Shown here: positions 10,798-25,801 of the stretch, in pieces | Numbering within the stretch: the stretch's first letter is position 1 | How the letters are laid out: each line of letters begins with the position of its first letter | Assembly: GCA_028826165.1 (NCBI GenBank) | Contig: JAPDFW010000147.1 | Span: forward strand, 496,001-560,000 | Direction: 5' to 3' | DNA from: Anaeramoeba ignava BMAN | Lineage: Eukaryota > Protista > Anaeramoebae | DNA: 64,000 nucleotides | Position numbers and translations under genes: made by a program | Notes under the pieces: model-generated | Told to the model about the DNA's origin: nothing | Database searches by the model: none | The model's input: the letters and a program-made list of their open reading frames with translations, nothing else

Positions 10798-11504
10798 ATG
10801 CAAGTCTCAATCACATTTTGTGGTGGTAAATAAATAAAATTAAAATTAAAATTAAAATTAAAATTAAAATTAAAATAAAAATTAATATTAAAATTAAAAT
10901 TAAAATTAAAATTAAAAATTAAAATTAAAATTAAAATTAAAAAATTAAAATTTAAAATTAAAATTGAAATTAAAATTAAAATTAAAATTAAAATTAAAAT
11001 CAATATAAAAATTAAAATTAAAATTAAAATTATAATTAAAATTAAAATTAAAATTAATATAAAAATTGAAATTAAAATCAAAATTAAAATTAAAATTCTT
11101 TTAAAAATTAAAATCAAAATTTAAAATTAAAATCAAAATTAAAATTAAAATTAAAATTAAAATTAAAATTTAAATTAAAATTAAAATTAAAATTAAAATT
11201 AAAATTAAAATTAAAATTTAAAATTAAAATTAAAATTCTTTTATAAATTAAATTTAAAATTAAAATAGGATGAGGAATCTACGGTGAATTCCTCTATGTA
11301 GCTAATGCATTAAAAGAATACGGATATAAAGTTATCCCAAAACATGGTCATGGTGGATATCTTTTCGAAGTTCAAGCTGAAGATGGAACTTTAATTTACT
11401 CAAGAAAAAAAACAGGAAGATTCCCAGAACCAGATGACTTAATTGAATTATTACAAGCACACCAAGCAAAATTAGATAAAAAAAAAGAGGAAAAGAAGAA
11501 ATAA
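10798..11504 (+). CDS. SELENOW: Selenoprotein W / Rdx-family selenoprotein (87 aa, CGGU motif); exons 10798-10825 and 11269-11504; Sec TGA at 11271-11273
   Basis: Splicing GT(10826) to AG(11268) gives MQVSITFCGG-U-GIYGEFLYVANALKEYGYKVIPKHGHGGYLFEVQAEDGTLIYSRKKTGRFPEPDDLIELL..., which has the Rdx CxxU motif plus the FEV...LIYS.K..GRFP signature. SECIS lies downstream. Confidence 0.92.
10830..11265 (+). repeat. (AAAATT)n microsatellite filling the SelW intron
   Basis: Direct observation. Confidence 0.9.
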
Positions 11505-11621
11505 ATCAAATCCACTTTTTTTTTAATTCAAAAAAATCAATCAAAAAAAATGCATTAGCTTTCATTTTAAATCATTTTATTTCGGTTTAAATCAAAAATG
11601 TTTTTTTCTTTTTCTTTTTTA

Positions 11622-11690
11622 TTTTTCATTTTCAATGAAGGTTTTATTTTAAATCAATTGACGAATAAAACCTGATAATTAATGGAAAAA
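11622..11690 (+). promoter_or_regulatory. SECIS element in the SelW 3' UTR
   Basis: Helix I TTTTTCATT/AATGGAAAA; core ATGA at 11635-11638 with GA at 11674-11675; helix II GGTTTTATTT/GAATAAAACC; apical AAA at 11651-11653. Confidence 0.9.
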
Positions 11691-18352: not shown

Positions 18353-21300
18353 ATGGAAAAATCAATTTTATTATTTTTTATTTTATTTTTTCTTTCTCCT
18401 TTATTAATTTTATTATTTAGATTTTTTAATTTTATTACTCCAAAGTAAATTAAATTTTAATTTAAAAAATTTTAATTAATTTTTAATCTTTTTTAAATTT
18501 AATTTTTTAAAAAGAACCAAATTTAGTAGAAAAATATCACATTTTTACAGAAGAGAAATTACTCTTAAATTTGGTACTTTTATTTCAGTTTCTTCTCCAA
18601 TCGGGAAAATTTGGGTAATTCAAAAAACAAAAAGAAATTTTTTTTTTGTTTTTTGATCCACTTTTTTTTCTTTTTAATCTTTTATTATTAATTTTTTTTT
18701 TGATAGGAAATTTTTCAAATTTTTTTAACAATTTTTTTCGCTTTTACTTTTATTATTGGAAGTTATTTTTCTATTGAAACCACACATGAAAATATTGATA
18801 AAATTGAACAAGTTCTTTGCGTTTTTTTCTTTATAGATTATTTAATGAAATTTTTGGTTGCAATTGATAAGTATTTATTATTAAATTTAAAATAAAAAGT
18901 GGAACAGAAATTAATCTTTTTATTAATTTTAATTTTTAAAAATAGATTTTCCTTTTATTTTAGCTTTTTTTCGATTATTGATCTTTTAATTTTAATTCCT
19001 TTTATTGAAACGTATTTTTATATAAAAAAGAAAAAAAAAAATTTATCTAAAATTTAATTTACACACAAAAAAAAATTGATTGATTGATTGATTGATTTAG
19101 AAAATTATTTCATATAACTTGGAACAAATCATTTGCAACTCCAATGAGAATTTTAAGAGTTTTTCGAATTTTTCGACTTTTTAGAGTTTTAACTTTTTCG
19201 AAATCAAGTAATAAAATAAAAAATAATAAAAAAAGTGGAACAAAAAAAAATAATAAAAAATAAAAAAAATAATTAATGATAAAACAAATCTTGGGGATAA
19301 AAACCAAAACAAAAGTTTGGAAGCATTCATTTACAAAACTTATTCTTCTTGTTTTCTGTCTTTTATTCAGTGCATGTGGTTTAATACAAATCATAGAAAA
19401 AGAACAGCAATTATCATTTCATGAAGTGGCATATTTTATGGTCATTGTAAAAAAATCTTTTTAATAAAACACTTAAAAACAATAATACGAAACAAAATTC
19501 AAATATAAAGTCTATTGCAACTGTTGGATATGGCGATATAACGCCAAAAACACAAACAGGAAAAATGGTCATGACTTGTATCATTATTTGCACAGCTTTT
19601 GCAATTCCGTACCAATTAAATCGCATGAGCATACTGAAGAGGAAATACAAAAGTAACGTTTTTTTATCCGAAATTTATTGATTAGAGAAAAAAAAATAAT
19701 AAATAAAATAATAATTAAAAAAATAAATAAAAAGAACAATCGCAATCAATATCAAGAGATAATTCTCTTAGACATATTCTTGTAACAGGTTCGCTCACAA
19801 AATTTGCGTTATTGGAATTTTTAAATGAGATTTTGAACCAAACAAAGGTATTTTTTTAATGCTTATCAATTAGCAATCCAATTTTTTTTTGATGGTTTTA
19901 TCCAAAGATTCTTTATCATAAAAATAAAAATGAATCAACATCGAAACTTTACTTAATTTATCACAAATTTTCTCTACAAACTATTTTATGTGTCAAAAAT
20001 AATTAAAAAAAATAGACTAGAGGAGGTATAAAGCTTCAAGTTGTTTTATTGAGTTTGGATGATTTTTCAGAAATTGAACAAGAAATTCTCGTTAATCCTC
20101 AATTTGATTCATGGGTGAAAGCAATATATGGCACTCCTCTGGAAAAGGCAGATCTTGAACGTGCAAGTTTTGGTGATGATTCAACTTGCATTATTTTATC
20201 AAATTTAAGATCCAAATTTCCTTATTTTGAAGATTCTTCAAATATTATGAAATCTGCTGCTTTGAAATACTTTAAACCAAGGTCTAAAATATATCTTCAG
20301 TGCATAAATTTTACTCAAACAGAATATTTAAAGGGGATTACTTCAGGAACATTAATACAAAATGCGCTTAATAAGGTTTTTTTTACATTTTTTGTTTGGA
20401 TGTTTTTTTCCAATTTAAAATCACTAACAACAATTATAAATATCTTTTTTTTCCGCAATTTAATTGCTTGTCACATAATGAATAGGCTATTTTTGTGCTT
20501 AATATAATGCATCCAGGAATGGGAACATTTATTGTGAATATTTTTCAAACTCCCCAAATCGAACAAATGAAATTTAATCAAGAAGATGCTAAATGGAAAA
20601 GAGAATATTTGGAAGGTGTAGCAATGTATATTTTTCGCGTTGCTATGCCGAGTTTTTTCAGCGGACAAACCTTTTCTAGTGCTTGTAAAATAATTTACCA
20701 AAAATTGGAAATTTTACTTTTTGGAGTTGTAGTTCAAGATGATAAAGGAGGTTGTGTTTGTCTTTTAAATCCTGGAAAAAGTTATATAATCCACAAGGGA
20801 GACATTGGGTTTGTTTTAGCTTCTTCTCATATCCAAGTTAATAAAATTTGGAATATATTTTTAGATAAGAAAAGGATCAGTGTGAGATCTAAATTGAATT
20901 TTTCTGAATTTCTATTGAATATTTCAGAAATTTCAAATAAATGGAATGAAAATATAAATTCAAAATCGAATGAAAATATAAAATCAAATGAAAATATAAA
21001 TCAAAATTCAAAATCAAATGAAAATACAAAATCAAAATCAAATGAAAATACGAAATCAAATGAAAATATAAAATCAAAATCAAATGAAAATACAAAATCA
21101 AAATCAAATGAAAATATAGATTCAAATGAAAATACAAAATCAAAATCAAATGAAAGTTCAAATTCAAATCAAAGTTCAAATGAAAATATAAATCAAAATT
21201 CAATCCAAAGTTTAAATGAATATTCAATTCAAAGTTTAAATCAATACTCAACCCAAAGTTTCAATCAATACTCTTTACAAAGATTTGCCTCATTTATTGT

Positions 21301-23067
21301 TCCTCCACCTGCTCCTAGAATGAATTACAATCAACTCAAAAATCTTTATGATCCTGCTCATAAAAGTGTTATTTTCCCTCCTGATATTTCTTTTCTTGAT
21401 GATATATTTGTATCTCATGATCTTTTTCCTGATTTAAAGCAAAAACTTATTTTTAAATCTTTAGTTAATAAATTTCAACATTCAAAATTTAAAGAAAATC
21501 AAAATCAAAATCAAAATCAAAATCAAAATCAAAATCAAAATCAAAATCAAAATCAAATTCAAAATCAAAATCAAAATCAAAATCAAAATCAAAATAATCA
21601 AAATAATCAAAATCAAATTTTAAATCTTGATTCTTTATCGAATTCTGATTTCGTTTCATTTACTGATTTTGAAACTGAAACTGAAAATGAAATTAATCAA
21701 GAAACTCCTCAAATTATTTCTTTTGAGATCAATATGAAAAATTTAGAATTAAAAAATGATTCAGATTCTAAAATTGGAATGGATTTTAATAATTCAGAAT
21801 TCGAAATAGAATTAGAATCAGAATCAGAATTAGAATCAGAATTAGAAAATAAAAATGAAAATGAAAATGAAAATGAAAATGAAAATGATTTTACAAAAAT
21901 TTTCGCATTTAGAAATTATAATCAAGTCATTTTAAAACAAAAATGCGATTTCAATGATCATATTGTTGCATTTTGTTCATTTCAAGATTCCAAAAATTTC
22001 TTACTTTCACTTCGAAATGAAGAAATAGTTAATTTTCTAGATAAAACAAAAGGATTAAATTCTTCCAAAAATAAATCAAAACATTCAAATATTTGGGATC
22101 CTTTGATTGTTTTATTGGTTGTACAAAAATTACCTTCAGAAACAGAATGGATTTTAATGCTTGAACATGATCCTATTGTTTTTTCTAATGTTTTCTTTAT
22201 GATTCGCCCAAATTCAGAAATTGAATCAATTCGTTTTGCAAGAATGAAAAAGGCAAAAAAAATTGTTATTTTTTCTTCTCATTGGATTCAAGATTCTCTT
22301 GATTTAGATTCAAAAACTGTAGATATTGAAATTATTCAATTGATTAAAACTCTTGAAAAATCTATTGATATTTCTAAAATTACAGCAGAATTAAGTAAAT
22401 TGAAATCAAAAAAAAAAAATATTAATTAATTAATTAATTCATTCATTCATTCATTCATTTCAAATAATATCATTTTTTTTCTTTTCAATCAAATTTTAGT
22501 TGATTTAAAAAATTCTCAACTTTTGGAAACTTCAATAATTCCAAAAAATGGATCACAAAAAAAAAAAGAACTAAAATTTAATCATGATAAAATTTTAGAA
22601 AATTTATATTTTGGATCAGGAACTTTAATTCCCACAAATTTTTTTAATACTTTAACAGCACAGGTTTAAAAAACAACAACAATTTTAATTTTATATTTAA
22701 TTAAATTCAATTCAAAATTCAATTCAAAATTTAATTTTATAAATAGACTATTCACAATCCAGATTCAATTCAAATTATAAAAGCAATGGCACTTAATTAT
22801 GTTTTTGATTCATCTTATTATCCTTATCAGTCAAGATTATCAATTATTCCTTTACCAAAACATTTCACTTCAAAATCATTTGGATCACTTTTTAATTTTT
22901 TAATAAGCAAATCAATTCTTCCTTTAGCTTTATATCGATCACAAAATATAGATTTAGGAAATAATTTACCATATGTTTATACAAGACCATTAAAAACAAC
23001 AATATGTCATAAAAAAGACAAAGTGATTATTTTAGTTAAAAATGAAATGAAGAATATAATTTTTTGA
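18353..23067 (+). CDS. Slo/BK-family potassium channel alpha subunit, multi-exon
   Basis: S4 segment MRILRVFRIFRLFRVL; pore filter SIATVGYGDITP at about 19511; RCK-like segments RHILVTG, LLNPG...IHKGDIGFVLA, DHIVAFC and PLALYRS...YVYTRP; low-complexity insert between the RCK domains. Confidence 0.88.
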
Positions 23068-23156
23068 ATTAAATTTTTTTGAATTAAAATTTTTTTGAAT
23101 TAAATTTAAAATAAATATTTTTTAATTGAATTTGTTTTTCTTTTGATTTATTGATT

Positions 23157-23228
23157 TCATAATAAGCTCAAATCAATTTGCCTTAAATTTCTTTAAGGTT
23201 TCCAAAAAGATTTTCATATTCATTATGA
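23157..23228 (-). promoter_or_regulatory. SECIS element (type II, with apical mini-stem) in the thioredoxin reductase 3' UTR
   Basis: Minus strand reads TCATAATGA-AT-ATGA-A-AATCTTTTTGG-AAA-CCTTAAA-GAAA-TTTAAGG-CAAATTGATT-T-GA-GC-TTATTATGA. Helix I, AUGA/GA core, helix II, unpaired AAA and a 7-bp mini-stem are all present. Confidence 0.88.
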
Positions 23229-23395
23229 TTTAAAAATAAATCAAAAAGAAAAAGAGAAAGAAAAGAGAAGAGACAATGCTTTCCAAAAATTTTTCAAAAG
23301 AAAAAAAGTGGATCAAAAAATTTTCAAGAAGAAAAAAAGTGGATCAAAAAATTTTCAAGAAGAAAAAAAGTGGATCAAAAAATTTGGAAAGCAAA

Positions 23396-25801
23396 TTAAC
23401 CTCAGCAACCAGTTTTTTTAGGGTCTTTCCCAGATCTTTTTGTAACATCCAAGTTTGTGAAATTTTCAGCACAAGTAGGATGAATACCAAGAGTTGAATC
23501 AAGTTGAGATTTTGTGATACCGCATTTCATTGAAGCGGCGAAACCCTGAATAATTTCACCAGCATTTGGACCGAAATAATGGATCCCGAGAATTTTCTCA
23601 TTTTCCAATTTATTGCAAATGACTTTTATGTAGCATTCGTTTTCAGCGAAATGGGGAAGAGCGAACTCCAAGGGCGTAAAATATGAGTGATAAACTTCGA
23701 TATTTTCAAGTTTGTAAGTTGAAATTGCTTCTTCTTCAGATAAACCAGCAGATCCATATTCAAGTGGAGTAAAAACAGCTGTTGGAATTAAAGAGTAATC
23801 AGTCTTTTGTGTGGAGTCACCATACAGTCTAAATGCAAGTAATTTTCCTTGCGAAATTGCAAATGGTGTGAGTTCGGGACTTCCACTTGAAACATCTCCA
23901 ATTGCGTAAATATTTTTCACACTTGATTGACAATTTTTTTGCGCTATTTTTCCTTCTTTATCAAGTGCGATTCCTATTTTTTCTAAGTTCATTCTTTGTG
24001 TTTGAGCTCTTCGACCGATTGCAGATAAAACAGTGTCGAATTCTGCTTGTTTTTCTTGTCCGTTTTCGATATTTTGGAAACTGACAAGATATTTTGAATT
24101 ATTATTGTTTTGGATTTTCTTGATTTCTTTTAAAACGCTTTTGTGAAGAAATGCAACGCCTTTTCGTGCTAAATTGTTTTGGATCATTTTGGCCATTTGT
24201 TGATCAAATTTTCTTAGTACTTTTGACCGAACCATTACTGAGGTGTCGAATCCTAATCCGGATAATACTCCTGCTGCTTCTAATCCTATATATGCTGCTC
24301 CTAATATTAATGTTTTTCCTGGTGGTGTTGGTAATGAAAATAAATCGTTGCTTGTAATGCAATGTTCTCCTCCTGGTACTTGTGGAATAATAGGTGTTCC
24401 TTTTCATTTTTGAATTAAATTTGAATATTAAATATTGAATAAATTTAAATATTAAATGGATTTGAATATTAAATGGATTTAAATATTAAATATTAAATAT
24501 TAAATATTAAATATTAAATATTAAATATTAATTATTAAATATTAAATAAATATAAATATTAAATATTAAATGAATTTAAATATTAAATATTAAATATTAA
24601 ATATTAAATAATAAATATTAAATAAATATTAAATATTAAATATTAAATAAATATTAAATATTAAATGAATTTAAATATTAAATATTAAATATTGAATATT
24701 AAATAAATTTGAATATTAAATATTAAATATTAAATATTAAATAAATATTAAATATTAAATATTAAAAATAAATAAATATTAAATATTAAATAAAAATAAA
24801 TATTAAATATTTAAATAATAAAATATTAAATGTTGAATGAATTTAAATATTAAATATTAAATATTAAATAAATTTAAATATTGAATATTAAATAAATATT
24901 AAATATTAAATAAATATTAAATGAATTTAAATATTAAATATTAAATAAATATTAAATATTAAATAAATTTGAATATTAAATAAATATTAAATATTAAATA
25001 TCAAATATTAAATAAATATTAAATATTAAATATTAAATATTAAATAAATATAAATATTAAATGAATTTAAATATTAAATATTAAATATTAATTAAATTTA
25101 AATATTAAATATTAAATATTAATTAAATTTAAATATTAAATAATAAATATTAAATATTAAATATTAAATAAATATTAAATATTAAATAAATTTGAATGTT
25201 AAATGGATTTAAATCAATAAGTACCACCAGTAGCAATAACAATATTTTCAGCAGTAATTAATTTAACATCATCTGAACCTTTGCGAACCAATTCAATTTC
25301 ATGTTCAGATTTGAGTCTTGCAAAGAAATTTAGGTAATCAATACCTTTTTGCCTAAGCTTAACTTTATAACCCCAATTCAAAGAACGAATATAACTTTGA
25401 ACATTATTAATCATTAAATTCCAATTATGTTTAGCGTTAATTGGATCAACATCCCATCCATAGAACGTTGAAAAATGGAGATTTTCTCGTGATTGCGCAG
25501 CAGCATGAAGAAGCTTCTTGGGGATACATCCAACGTTTGGGCAGGCTCCCCCTATTCCCCATTTAGATCCCCTTAAAGTTGGTTCAACATAATCCATAAG
25601 TGCTACTTTTGCCCCTAATTCTGCTGCCTTTTGGGAGACTGATAACCCCCCTGAACCTCCGCCTATAACTGCTAAATCATATTGATATCCCCCCTTCTTC
25701 TCGCTAATCTTTCGAAAAATCTTCTTCGTTATTTCTGTTCCTAATTGCTTTTTTATTTCTGTTTTCTTTGTTAATGTCAAATGTTTTCCTGTTAAAAGCA
25801 T
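23396..25801 (-). CDS. TXNRD: Selenocysteine-containing high-Mr thioredoxin reductase (526 aa, C-terminal GCUG) with N-terminal presequence; exons 25801-25225 and 24399-23396
   Basis: FAD-binding YDLAVIGGGSGG, redox motif GGACPNVGCIPKK, NADPH motif ILGAAYIGLE, interface GIHPTCAE. The end reads ACT GGT TGC TGA GGT TAA (TGA at 23404-23402). GT-AG intron 25224-24400. Confidence 0.95.
24420..25200. repeat. (AAATATT)n microsatellite filling the TrxR intron
   Basis: Direct observation. Confidence 0.9.

Follow-up and report, generated by a model that had tools for sequence, protein, structure and literature searches.

The protist Anaeramoeba ignava very probably carries a nuclear gene, here called TrxR-a, for a high-molecular-mass (high-Mr) thioredoxin reductase (TrxR) that contains selenocysteine (Sec). 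The gene lies in a 64,000-nt stretch of the 42.8-Mb A. ignava assembly (positions 496,001–560,000 of contig JAPDFW010000147.1; GC ~20%), hereafter "the window," and sequence comparisons point to an enzyme whose last two residues, Sec and Gly, are encoded beyond an in-frame TGA. Its two exons lie on the minus strand (25801–25225 + 24399–23396), with the following parts:

25225–25801, minus strand: exon 1, from the ATG (25801–25799) to the first base of a split Gly codon
24400–25224, minus strand: phase-1 GT...AG intron of 825 nt, made up of AT-rich tandem repeats
23405–24399, minus strand: exon 2 as far as the penultimate Cys (Pfam, PDB alignment, and motif search)
23402–23404, minus strand: TGA putatively read as Sec, at the position next after Cys497 of rat TrxR1 (i.e., Sec498)
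23396–23401, minus strand: GGT (Gly) and TAA, the true stop (direct reading and paralogue comparison)

The coding end reads ACT-GGT-TGC (Cys at 23407–23405), TGA (23404–23402), GGT (23401–23399), and TAA (23398–23396). While the open reading frame (ORF) before the TGA ends ...KKTGC, the string GGT-TGC-TGA-GGT-TAA at 23410–23396 spells Gly-Cys-Sec-Gly and then a stop, so that the Gly-Cys-Sec-Gly (GCUG) tail that a first-pass annotation had placed beyond the ORF end can be read directly (TGC-TGA-GGT-TAA, 23407–23396). The deposited protein (P0001; KAJ5066210.1, "thioredoxin reductase 1 cytoplasmic [Anaeramoeba ignava]," 524 aa) is 100% identical to our translation of TrxR-a, and the splice junction (...IATGG on one side, TPIIPQ... 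on the other) is common to our model, to P0001, and to an identical 524-aa EukProt entry. Because the latter is named "a348449_184.p1 ... ORF type:complete," the form of name that TransDecoder gives to transcript ORFs, we take it that TrxR-a is expressed, with the splicing given in our model. The public annotation (524 aa, with a Cys end) is almost certainly truncated by two residues, giving a predicted full enzyme of 526.

The enzyme family is clear from the translation. Pfam recovers the architecture of class I pyridine nucleotide-disulphide oxidoreductases with a C-terminal dimerisation domain (Pyr_redox_2, E 1e-15 and 4.5e-31; Pyr_redox, 9e-16; Pyr_redox_dim, 1e-30), and the expected motifs are all in place: exon 1 carries the FAD-binding GGGSGG and the redox-active CPNVGC (within CPNVGCIPKK), and exon 2 the NADPH-binding GAAYIGLEAAG and VRSKVLRKFD, the dimerisation domain, and the His-Glu dyad in HPTCAE. 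Among solved structures, exon 2 matches rat and human TrxR1 best (E 1e-107), followed by TGR (4e-103), Plasmodium TrxR (6e-71), glutathione reductase (GR; 2e-61), and TryR (1e-47). As the rat TrxR1 alignment extends to ...SGC497, the TGA of TrxR-a occupies the position of Sec498. No glutaredoxin domain (PF00462) was found by Pfam in exon 1, where a ~40-residue N-terminal extension is free of domain matches, and TrxR-a is therefore not a TGR. Nor does it belong to the low-Mr TrxR class, which comprises proteins of about 310–330 aa with a CxxC in the NADPH domain and whose model (TIGR01292) matches it only weakly (43 bits, positions 146–292). By these comparisons TrxR-a is a high-Mr thioredoxin reductase (TXNRD/H-TrxR), nearer to TrxR than to the glutathione, trypanothione, or lipoamide reductases.

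A paralogue on another contig, TrxR-b (P0002; KAJ5080331.1, contig C2), is 62% identical to TrxR-a and ends in the same way, TGC-TGA-GGT-TAA (the TGA-GGT-TAA at L001:2485–2493). At the nucleotide level the two genes agree at 81% of the final 90 coding positions, at 100% of the nine bases of TGA-GGT-TAA, and at 33% of positions beyond. This pattern bears on the simplest alternative, namely that the TGA is an ordinary stop, that TrxR-a is a Cys-terminated reductase lacking Sec-Gly, and that any hairpin downstream is a chance AT-rich stem-loop. The transcript-style ORF call and the NCBI model do both end at the TGA, as this alternative would have it; yet GGT-TAA is kept base for base after it while the sequence beyond is unrelated, which speaks against an ordinary stop. 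Truncation at Sec-UGA, moreover, is routine in annotation pipelines: of the 120 top database homologues, 87 end in ...GC, in the manner usual for such truncation (insect SCCS forms make up 31 of the 120). Mammalian TrxR truncated before Sec is also inactive towards thioredoxin, which further argues against a functional enzyme that ends at this Cys.

The 3′ flank of TrxR-a supplies the second part of the argument, a hairpin with the shape of a type II Sec insertion sequence (SECIS) element. The features of the flank are:

23157–23228, minus strand: type II SECIS-shaped element, with AUGA at 23217–23214, AAA at 23201–23199, and GA at 23169–23168 (fold, covariance models, and rule scan)
23147–23152, minus strand: AATAAA hexamer, a few nt 3′ of SECIS helix I (direct reading)
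23301–23376, minus strand: three tandem copies of a ~31-nt repeat in the 3′ untranslated region (UTR), each with GATCCACTTTTTTT, a motif recurrent in the non-coding DNA of the window

The first-pass annotation had described such an element about 170 nt downstream, and folding of 23250–23140 (minus strand) reproduces it in every part. Helix I has 9 bp (23228–23220 paired with 23165–23157); the AUGA faces the GA; helix II spans 11 positions (two U.U mismatches between stretches of 5 and 4 bp); and the apex consists of a G and the AAA, a 7-bp mini-stem, and a GAAA loop. An additional outer stem, of 12 bp, lengthens the hairpin to 23246–23141. The structure folds at -26.4 kcal/mol (z = -4.05 relative to shuffles), and the element starts 167 nt after the TAA, with 185 nt between the UGA and the AUGA. 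The AATAAA may be a poly(A) signal.

Chance is a poor explanation for this hairpin, as the first-pass annotation had also held. Both strands of the window, other than 24477–24666, were scanned with structural rules that required an ATGA, 9 or more of the 11 helix II pairs, a correctly spaced AAR, the GA, and a helix I of 6 bp or longer. This rule scan returned exactly two elements: the SECIS of TrxR-a and that of a SelW-like gene (see below). Markov shuffles gave ~1.1 loose matches per window but only 0.005 per window as good as the TrxR-a element (i.e., with helix I of at least 9 bp and a mini-stem of at least 5 bp), which translates into odds of ~1e-5 for an equal hairpin in the ~400-nt 3′ flank and speaks against a fortuitous stem-loop behind an ordinary stop. 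In ~110 kb of other loci, the same scan recovered four of the five other SECIS elements of the genome together with six loose matches. The SECIS of TrxR-b (L001:3183–3245), which ~700 nt of tandem repeats separate from its stop, is built on the same plan (an 11-position helix II, G, AAA, and mini-stem), and scores second genome-wide with the Rfam model SECIS_1 (32.2 bits); that both paralogues carry SECIS-shaped hairpins of one architecture is again not what an ordinary stop predicts. Across the genome's SECIS set, in an alignment that was fitted to the model and includes one probable noise row, pairing in helix II reaches 83% and 9 of the 11 pairs show compensatory changes, a result that exceeds every control shuffle. 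A three-sequence MAFFT alignment including the TrxR-a element was set aside, its 3′ GA being misaligned.

Several observations nevertheless weigh against reading the TGA as Sec. The covariance-model check proposed in the first-pass annotation succeeded in form and fell short in score: SECIS_1 aligns the TrxR-a element end to end, but at 17.7 bits, below the gathering score of 35, a shortfall that we trace to the two mismatches and an insertion of 10 nt at the apex. A second model, R1, was trained on the five other A. ignava SECIS elements and confined to helix II, since helix I has no single register across them; it gives the TrxR-a element 18.3 bits (E ~0.9), the top non-training match in 1–24400 but hardly distinct from noise at 17.3. 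With scores this weak, which would suit a chance stem-loop, covariance models alone do not establish the SECIS. Both the position of the hairpin inside the mRNA and the insertion of Sec are what we infer from genomic sequence, and a search for sequencing runs turned up one run of unspecified kind and none from RNA; an ordinary stop would accommodate this too. The three GATCCACTTTTTTT copies that separate the TAA from the SECIS could conceivably signal an early 3′ end. A motif scan tolerating one mismatch located (G)ATCCACTTTTTTT at nine places in the window (11509, 18655, 19228, 23301, 23332, 23363, 29680, 41594, and 53755) against 0.38 expected, apparently always in non-coding DNA, and the motif may be a 3′-end or regulatory signal. 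However, one copy with a single mismatch stands directly after the SelW stop, between that stop and the strong SelW SECIS, and so the motif probably does not end transcripts there. Lastly, SBP2 is not securely identified in the genome, the only candidate being a weak L7Ae-domain ORF on contig C73 (described below). On balance we regard the TrxR-a hairpin as a plausible, canonical-shaped type II SECIS as modelled, and consider it very unlikely that the TGA is merely a stop; together with the paralogue, these features indicate that the UGA almost certainly encodes Sec.

A different concern is whether TrxR-a still works, i.e., whether it could be a decaying or non-functional duplicate with an eroding SECIS, leaving TrxR-b as the only working Sec-TrxR. 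Its redox box, CPNVGC (residue 87 of P0001; window 25545–25528, minus strand), is unique: 104 of the 105 homologues showing the motif have CVNVGC, the canonical form that TrxR-b also has, and the Val-to-Pro change is found in TrxR-a only. Its SECIS contains the two U.U mismatches and scores lowest of the six in the genome, and its branch in the tree described below is long (0.71). Against erosion, the reading frame is unbroken for 526 codons, every catalytic and cofactor motif is present, the GT-AG intron is clean, an identical ORF exists in EukProt under a transcript-style name, both redox Cys residues are retained, and the hairpin keeps every defining SECIS feature. Decay is thus a highly improbable account of these data, and we continue to treat TrxR-a as a Sec-containing reductase.

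If so, the mechanism would follow mammalian TrxR, from which we infer the catalytic path by analogy. The 3′-UTR SECIS (23228–23157) would recruit an SBP2-like protein and eEFSec carrying Sec-tRNA(Sec), and in this proposal it is for this reason that the UGA at 23404–23402 would be read as Sec; translation past it would add Gly and halt at the UAA. The spliced mRNA would encode a 526-residue flavoenzyme in which NADPH reduces FAD, electrons would pass from FAD to the N-terminal CPNVGC dithiol and on to the Gly-Cys-Sec-Gly selenenylsulfide on the partner subunit's flexible C-terminal tail, and this tail would reduce thioredoxin.

TrxR-a does not stand alone in this genome. The first-pass annotation had pointed to another Sec gene, SelW, some 12 kb away, and this SelW-like gene (SelW-1) proved real: it reads MQVSITFCGG-U-G... 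(CGGU), with a SECIS scoring 39.5 bits, above the gathering score. The larger, unannotated selenoproteome that had been anticipated also emerged, comprising a second Sec-TrxR, a second SelW, an Rdx-like gene, a UGA-containing SPS2, and a double-UGA ORF. The suggested genome-wide SECIS scan, run with SECIS_1, returned five matches at E ≤ 10, all five behind UGA-containing ORFs: SelW-1 in the window, TrxR-b, the double-UGA ORF on contig C73, the second SelW on C15, and the Rdx-like gene on C1. The loci concerned, other than TrxR-b, are:

10798–11686 of the window, plus strand: SelW-like selenoprotein gene (exon 1, 10798–10825; exon 2, 11269–11504; Sec TGA, 11271–11273; SECIS, 11625–11686)
L019:1499–1568 (G000:C73:332204–332265), minus strand: SECIS of the small ORF on C73, SECIS_1 29 bits
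L020:1497–1565, minus strand: SECIS of the second SelW-like gene, contig C15, which reads ...G-U-GIFGRYLWVANGLKEKGY...
L021:1498–1561, minus strand: SECIS of the Rdx-like gene, contig C1, which reads ...KKG-U-SDSRTARTL... / ...SGRYPHKEDIFEILREFLK
L009:1441–1911 (G000:C64:1028999–1030481): SPS2 gene, with an in-frame TGA in ...KG-U-SCKLPQDRL..., at the SelD active-site Cys/Sec position
L030:1288–3027 (G000:C73:330383–332122), plus strand: SBP2 candidate, a 579-aa ORF in which long QNE repeats come after a weak N-terminal L7Ae domain

The small ORF on C73 (64 codons, MCUMLFACCFGDDDGKPRC...SECSEGUN) has two in-frame TGAs and belongs to no obvious family. Homology searches place the Sec machinery in the genome as well, with predicted genes for tRNA-Sec (contig C85; 70.3 bits, called SeC with anticodon TCA by ARAGORN), SepSecS (C115; 493 bits), a PSTK-like protein (C118; E 5e-17), SPS2, and eEFSec. 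The last is a multi-exon gene on C24, two exons of which match human eEFSec best (E 2.4e-30 and 2.4e-26), far ahead of EF-Tu; the best TIGR00475 match (L014), at first a candidate for this factor, turned out to be eEF1A. The SPS2 gene has at least one more exon, and the part of L010 that lies downstream of the exons identified yielded no SECIS for it. One SECIS-like element there (L010:2199–2273) was rejected as a C/D-box snoRNA-like element inside a repeat-filled SPS2 intron (AUGAUGA ... CUGA and a terminal stem; SNORD63/79 at 25–26 bits, below threshold). As for SBP2, the C73 candidate is the sole non-ribosomal L7Ae candidate found; it is encoded on the strand opposite the C73 SECIS and ~100 nt away from it, scores 22–26 bits, right at the Pfam cut-off, and matches the L7Ae region of human SBP2 at E 0.077, while a PDB search matched only its low-complexity region.

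The first-pass annotation called the enzyme animal-type, a label that holds for its class (TrxR1 and GR matches as above) and fails for its origin. In a quick maximum-likelihood tree (IQ-TREE; 38 H-TrxRs, midpoint-rooted, without a GR outgroup), TrxR-a and TrxR-b are sisters (SH-aLRT 99) outside the animal clades, and the nearest neighbour of the pair is the amoebozoan Flabellula baltica, with weak support (88). The top named database matches of TrxR-a are insects and vertebrates, as contamination or a recent transfer from an animal would produce, but identity to animal enzymes is only 45–56%. The gene sits inside an 855-kb contig of ~20% GC, its AT-repeat intron and its composition are those of the host genome, as are its neighbours, and the grouping of the paralogues next to an amoebozoan sequence is likewise not that of a newly acquired animal gene. 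An animal source is barely credible on these grounds, and "animal-type," as far as these sequences go, names the enzyme class of TrxR-a and not where it came from.

Nor do the high-Mr enzymes replace the usual anaerobe type. A five-exon low-Mr (bacterial-type) TrxR-like gene is present on contig C13 (G000:C13:613128–615342, plus strand; L031/L032; TIGR01292 exon scores summing to ~307 bits), beside which the two high-Mr enzymes would sit.

Some observations concern the surroundings of these genes. Long AT-rich, microsatellite-like tandem repeats (~10–14 nt) fill the introns and 3′ UTRs of the selenoprotein genes (24400–25224 and 10826–11268 of the window; L001:2520–3100; L010:1881–2190), and such repeat filling is probably a general feature of the A. 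ignava genome. A convergent plus-strand gene (20495–23067), which encodes a calcium-activated BK potassium-channel alpha-subunit domain, comes to within ~90 nt of the TrxR-a SECIS on its 3′ side; ~330 nt separate the stops of the two genes, and the SECIS lies inside this gap. Upstream of TrxR-a on the minus strand are a 433-aa ORF of unknown function, an ankyrin ORF, and a DUF4185 ORF.

Sec-containing TrxR is known widely in eukaryotes and is new for the Anaeramoeba lineage as far as the searchable literature shows; we found there no Sec-TrxR of Anaeramoeba or of another metamonad. For the genus, the only mention of selenium found is a preprint on A. pumila, which reports two tRNA-Sec genes and a TrxR bearing a mitochondrial targeting sequence (MTS). 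Elsewhere in the group, M. exilis, Paratrimastix, and Trimastix have Sec machinery genes, and Giardia and Trichomonas do not use selenium. Metamonad selenium use has so far been tied to the SelW paralogues of Spironucleus and the machinery genes of Preaxostyla, whereas A. ignava would be a free-living obligate anaerobe related to metamonads with a Sec-dependent thioredoxin system beside the low-Mr one. This is relevant to the timing of H-TrxR and Sec loss in Metamonada, and to how cells with hydrogenosomes defend themselves against oxygen and peroxide.

TrxR-b has a basic N-terminal extension of ~50 residues that looks like a targeting peptide. From this extension, and from the MTS-bearing TrxR of A. 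pumila, comes a broader scenario that we put forward tentatively and regard as rather doubtful: the Anaeramoebae would have kept an ancestral eukaryotic Sec-dependent H-TrxR that was lost in Giardia and Trichomonas, duplicated it, and routed one copy to the hydrogenosome, within a set of at least 7–8 mostly unannotated selenoprotein genes, some of new families. Were the hydrogenosomal copy confirmed, hydrogenosomes would gain their first assigned selenoenzyme, and in an obligate anaerobe. More immediately, these data correct the annotations KAJ5066210.1 and KAJ5080331.1, both apparently truncated by the catalytic Sec-Gly, and yield a set of very AT-rich SECIS elements, scored too low by standard models, with which selenoprotein finders could be tuned for AT-rich protist genomes.

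Compared with known systems, TrxR-a resembles mammalian TXNRD1 (rat TrxR1, PDB 1H6V; human, 2J3N and 3EAN), with which it shares the domain order, the CxxxxC box, the NADPH and FAD motifs, the HPxxAE dyad, a Gly-Cys-Sec-Gly end directly before the stop, and a SECIS (here predicted) in the 3′ flank. It differs in its ~52–55% identity, its ~40-residue N-terminal extension, CPNVGC in place of CVNVGC, a SECIS that is very rich in AT and has a long mini-stem of 7 bp, and a single large repeat-filled intron. TGR has the same high-Mr fold with an N-terminal glutaredoxin domain added, and Plasmodium TrxR, again of this fold, has a Cys-only tail where TrxR-a has GCUG. The low-Mr TrxRs of Trichomonas, Giardia, and Entamoeba do the same job (i.e., NADPH-dependent thioredoxin reduction) but have an unrelated architecture at this level, being proteins of ~35 kDa without the dimerisation-interface domain, the C-terminal redox tail, or selenium.

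Among protists, the closest parallels are transcripts of Arcella (P0047) and Flabellula (P0015), which encode high-Mr TrxRs ending ...K(T/S)GC before a UGA, and a Sec-containing large TrxR is known in Acanthamoeba (AcTrxR-L; PMC11459619). These are aerobic Amoebozoa, unlike A. ignava, which belongs to Anaeramoebae/Metamonada. The anaerobic diplomonad Spironucleus salmonicida, with tRNA-Sec, PSTK, SPS, SepSecS, eEFSec, and three SelW paralogues (PMC3916229), resembles A. ignava in combining Sec machinery with SelW paralogues. However, while the three SelW paralogues are the only selenoproteins reported from S. salmonicida, and no Sec-TrxR among them, A. ignava appears to add two Sec-TrxRs, a Sec-containing SPS2, and further small UGA-containing ORFs.

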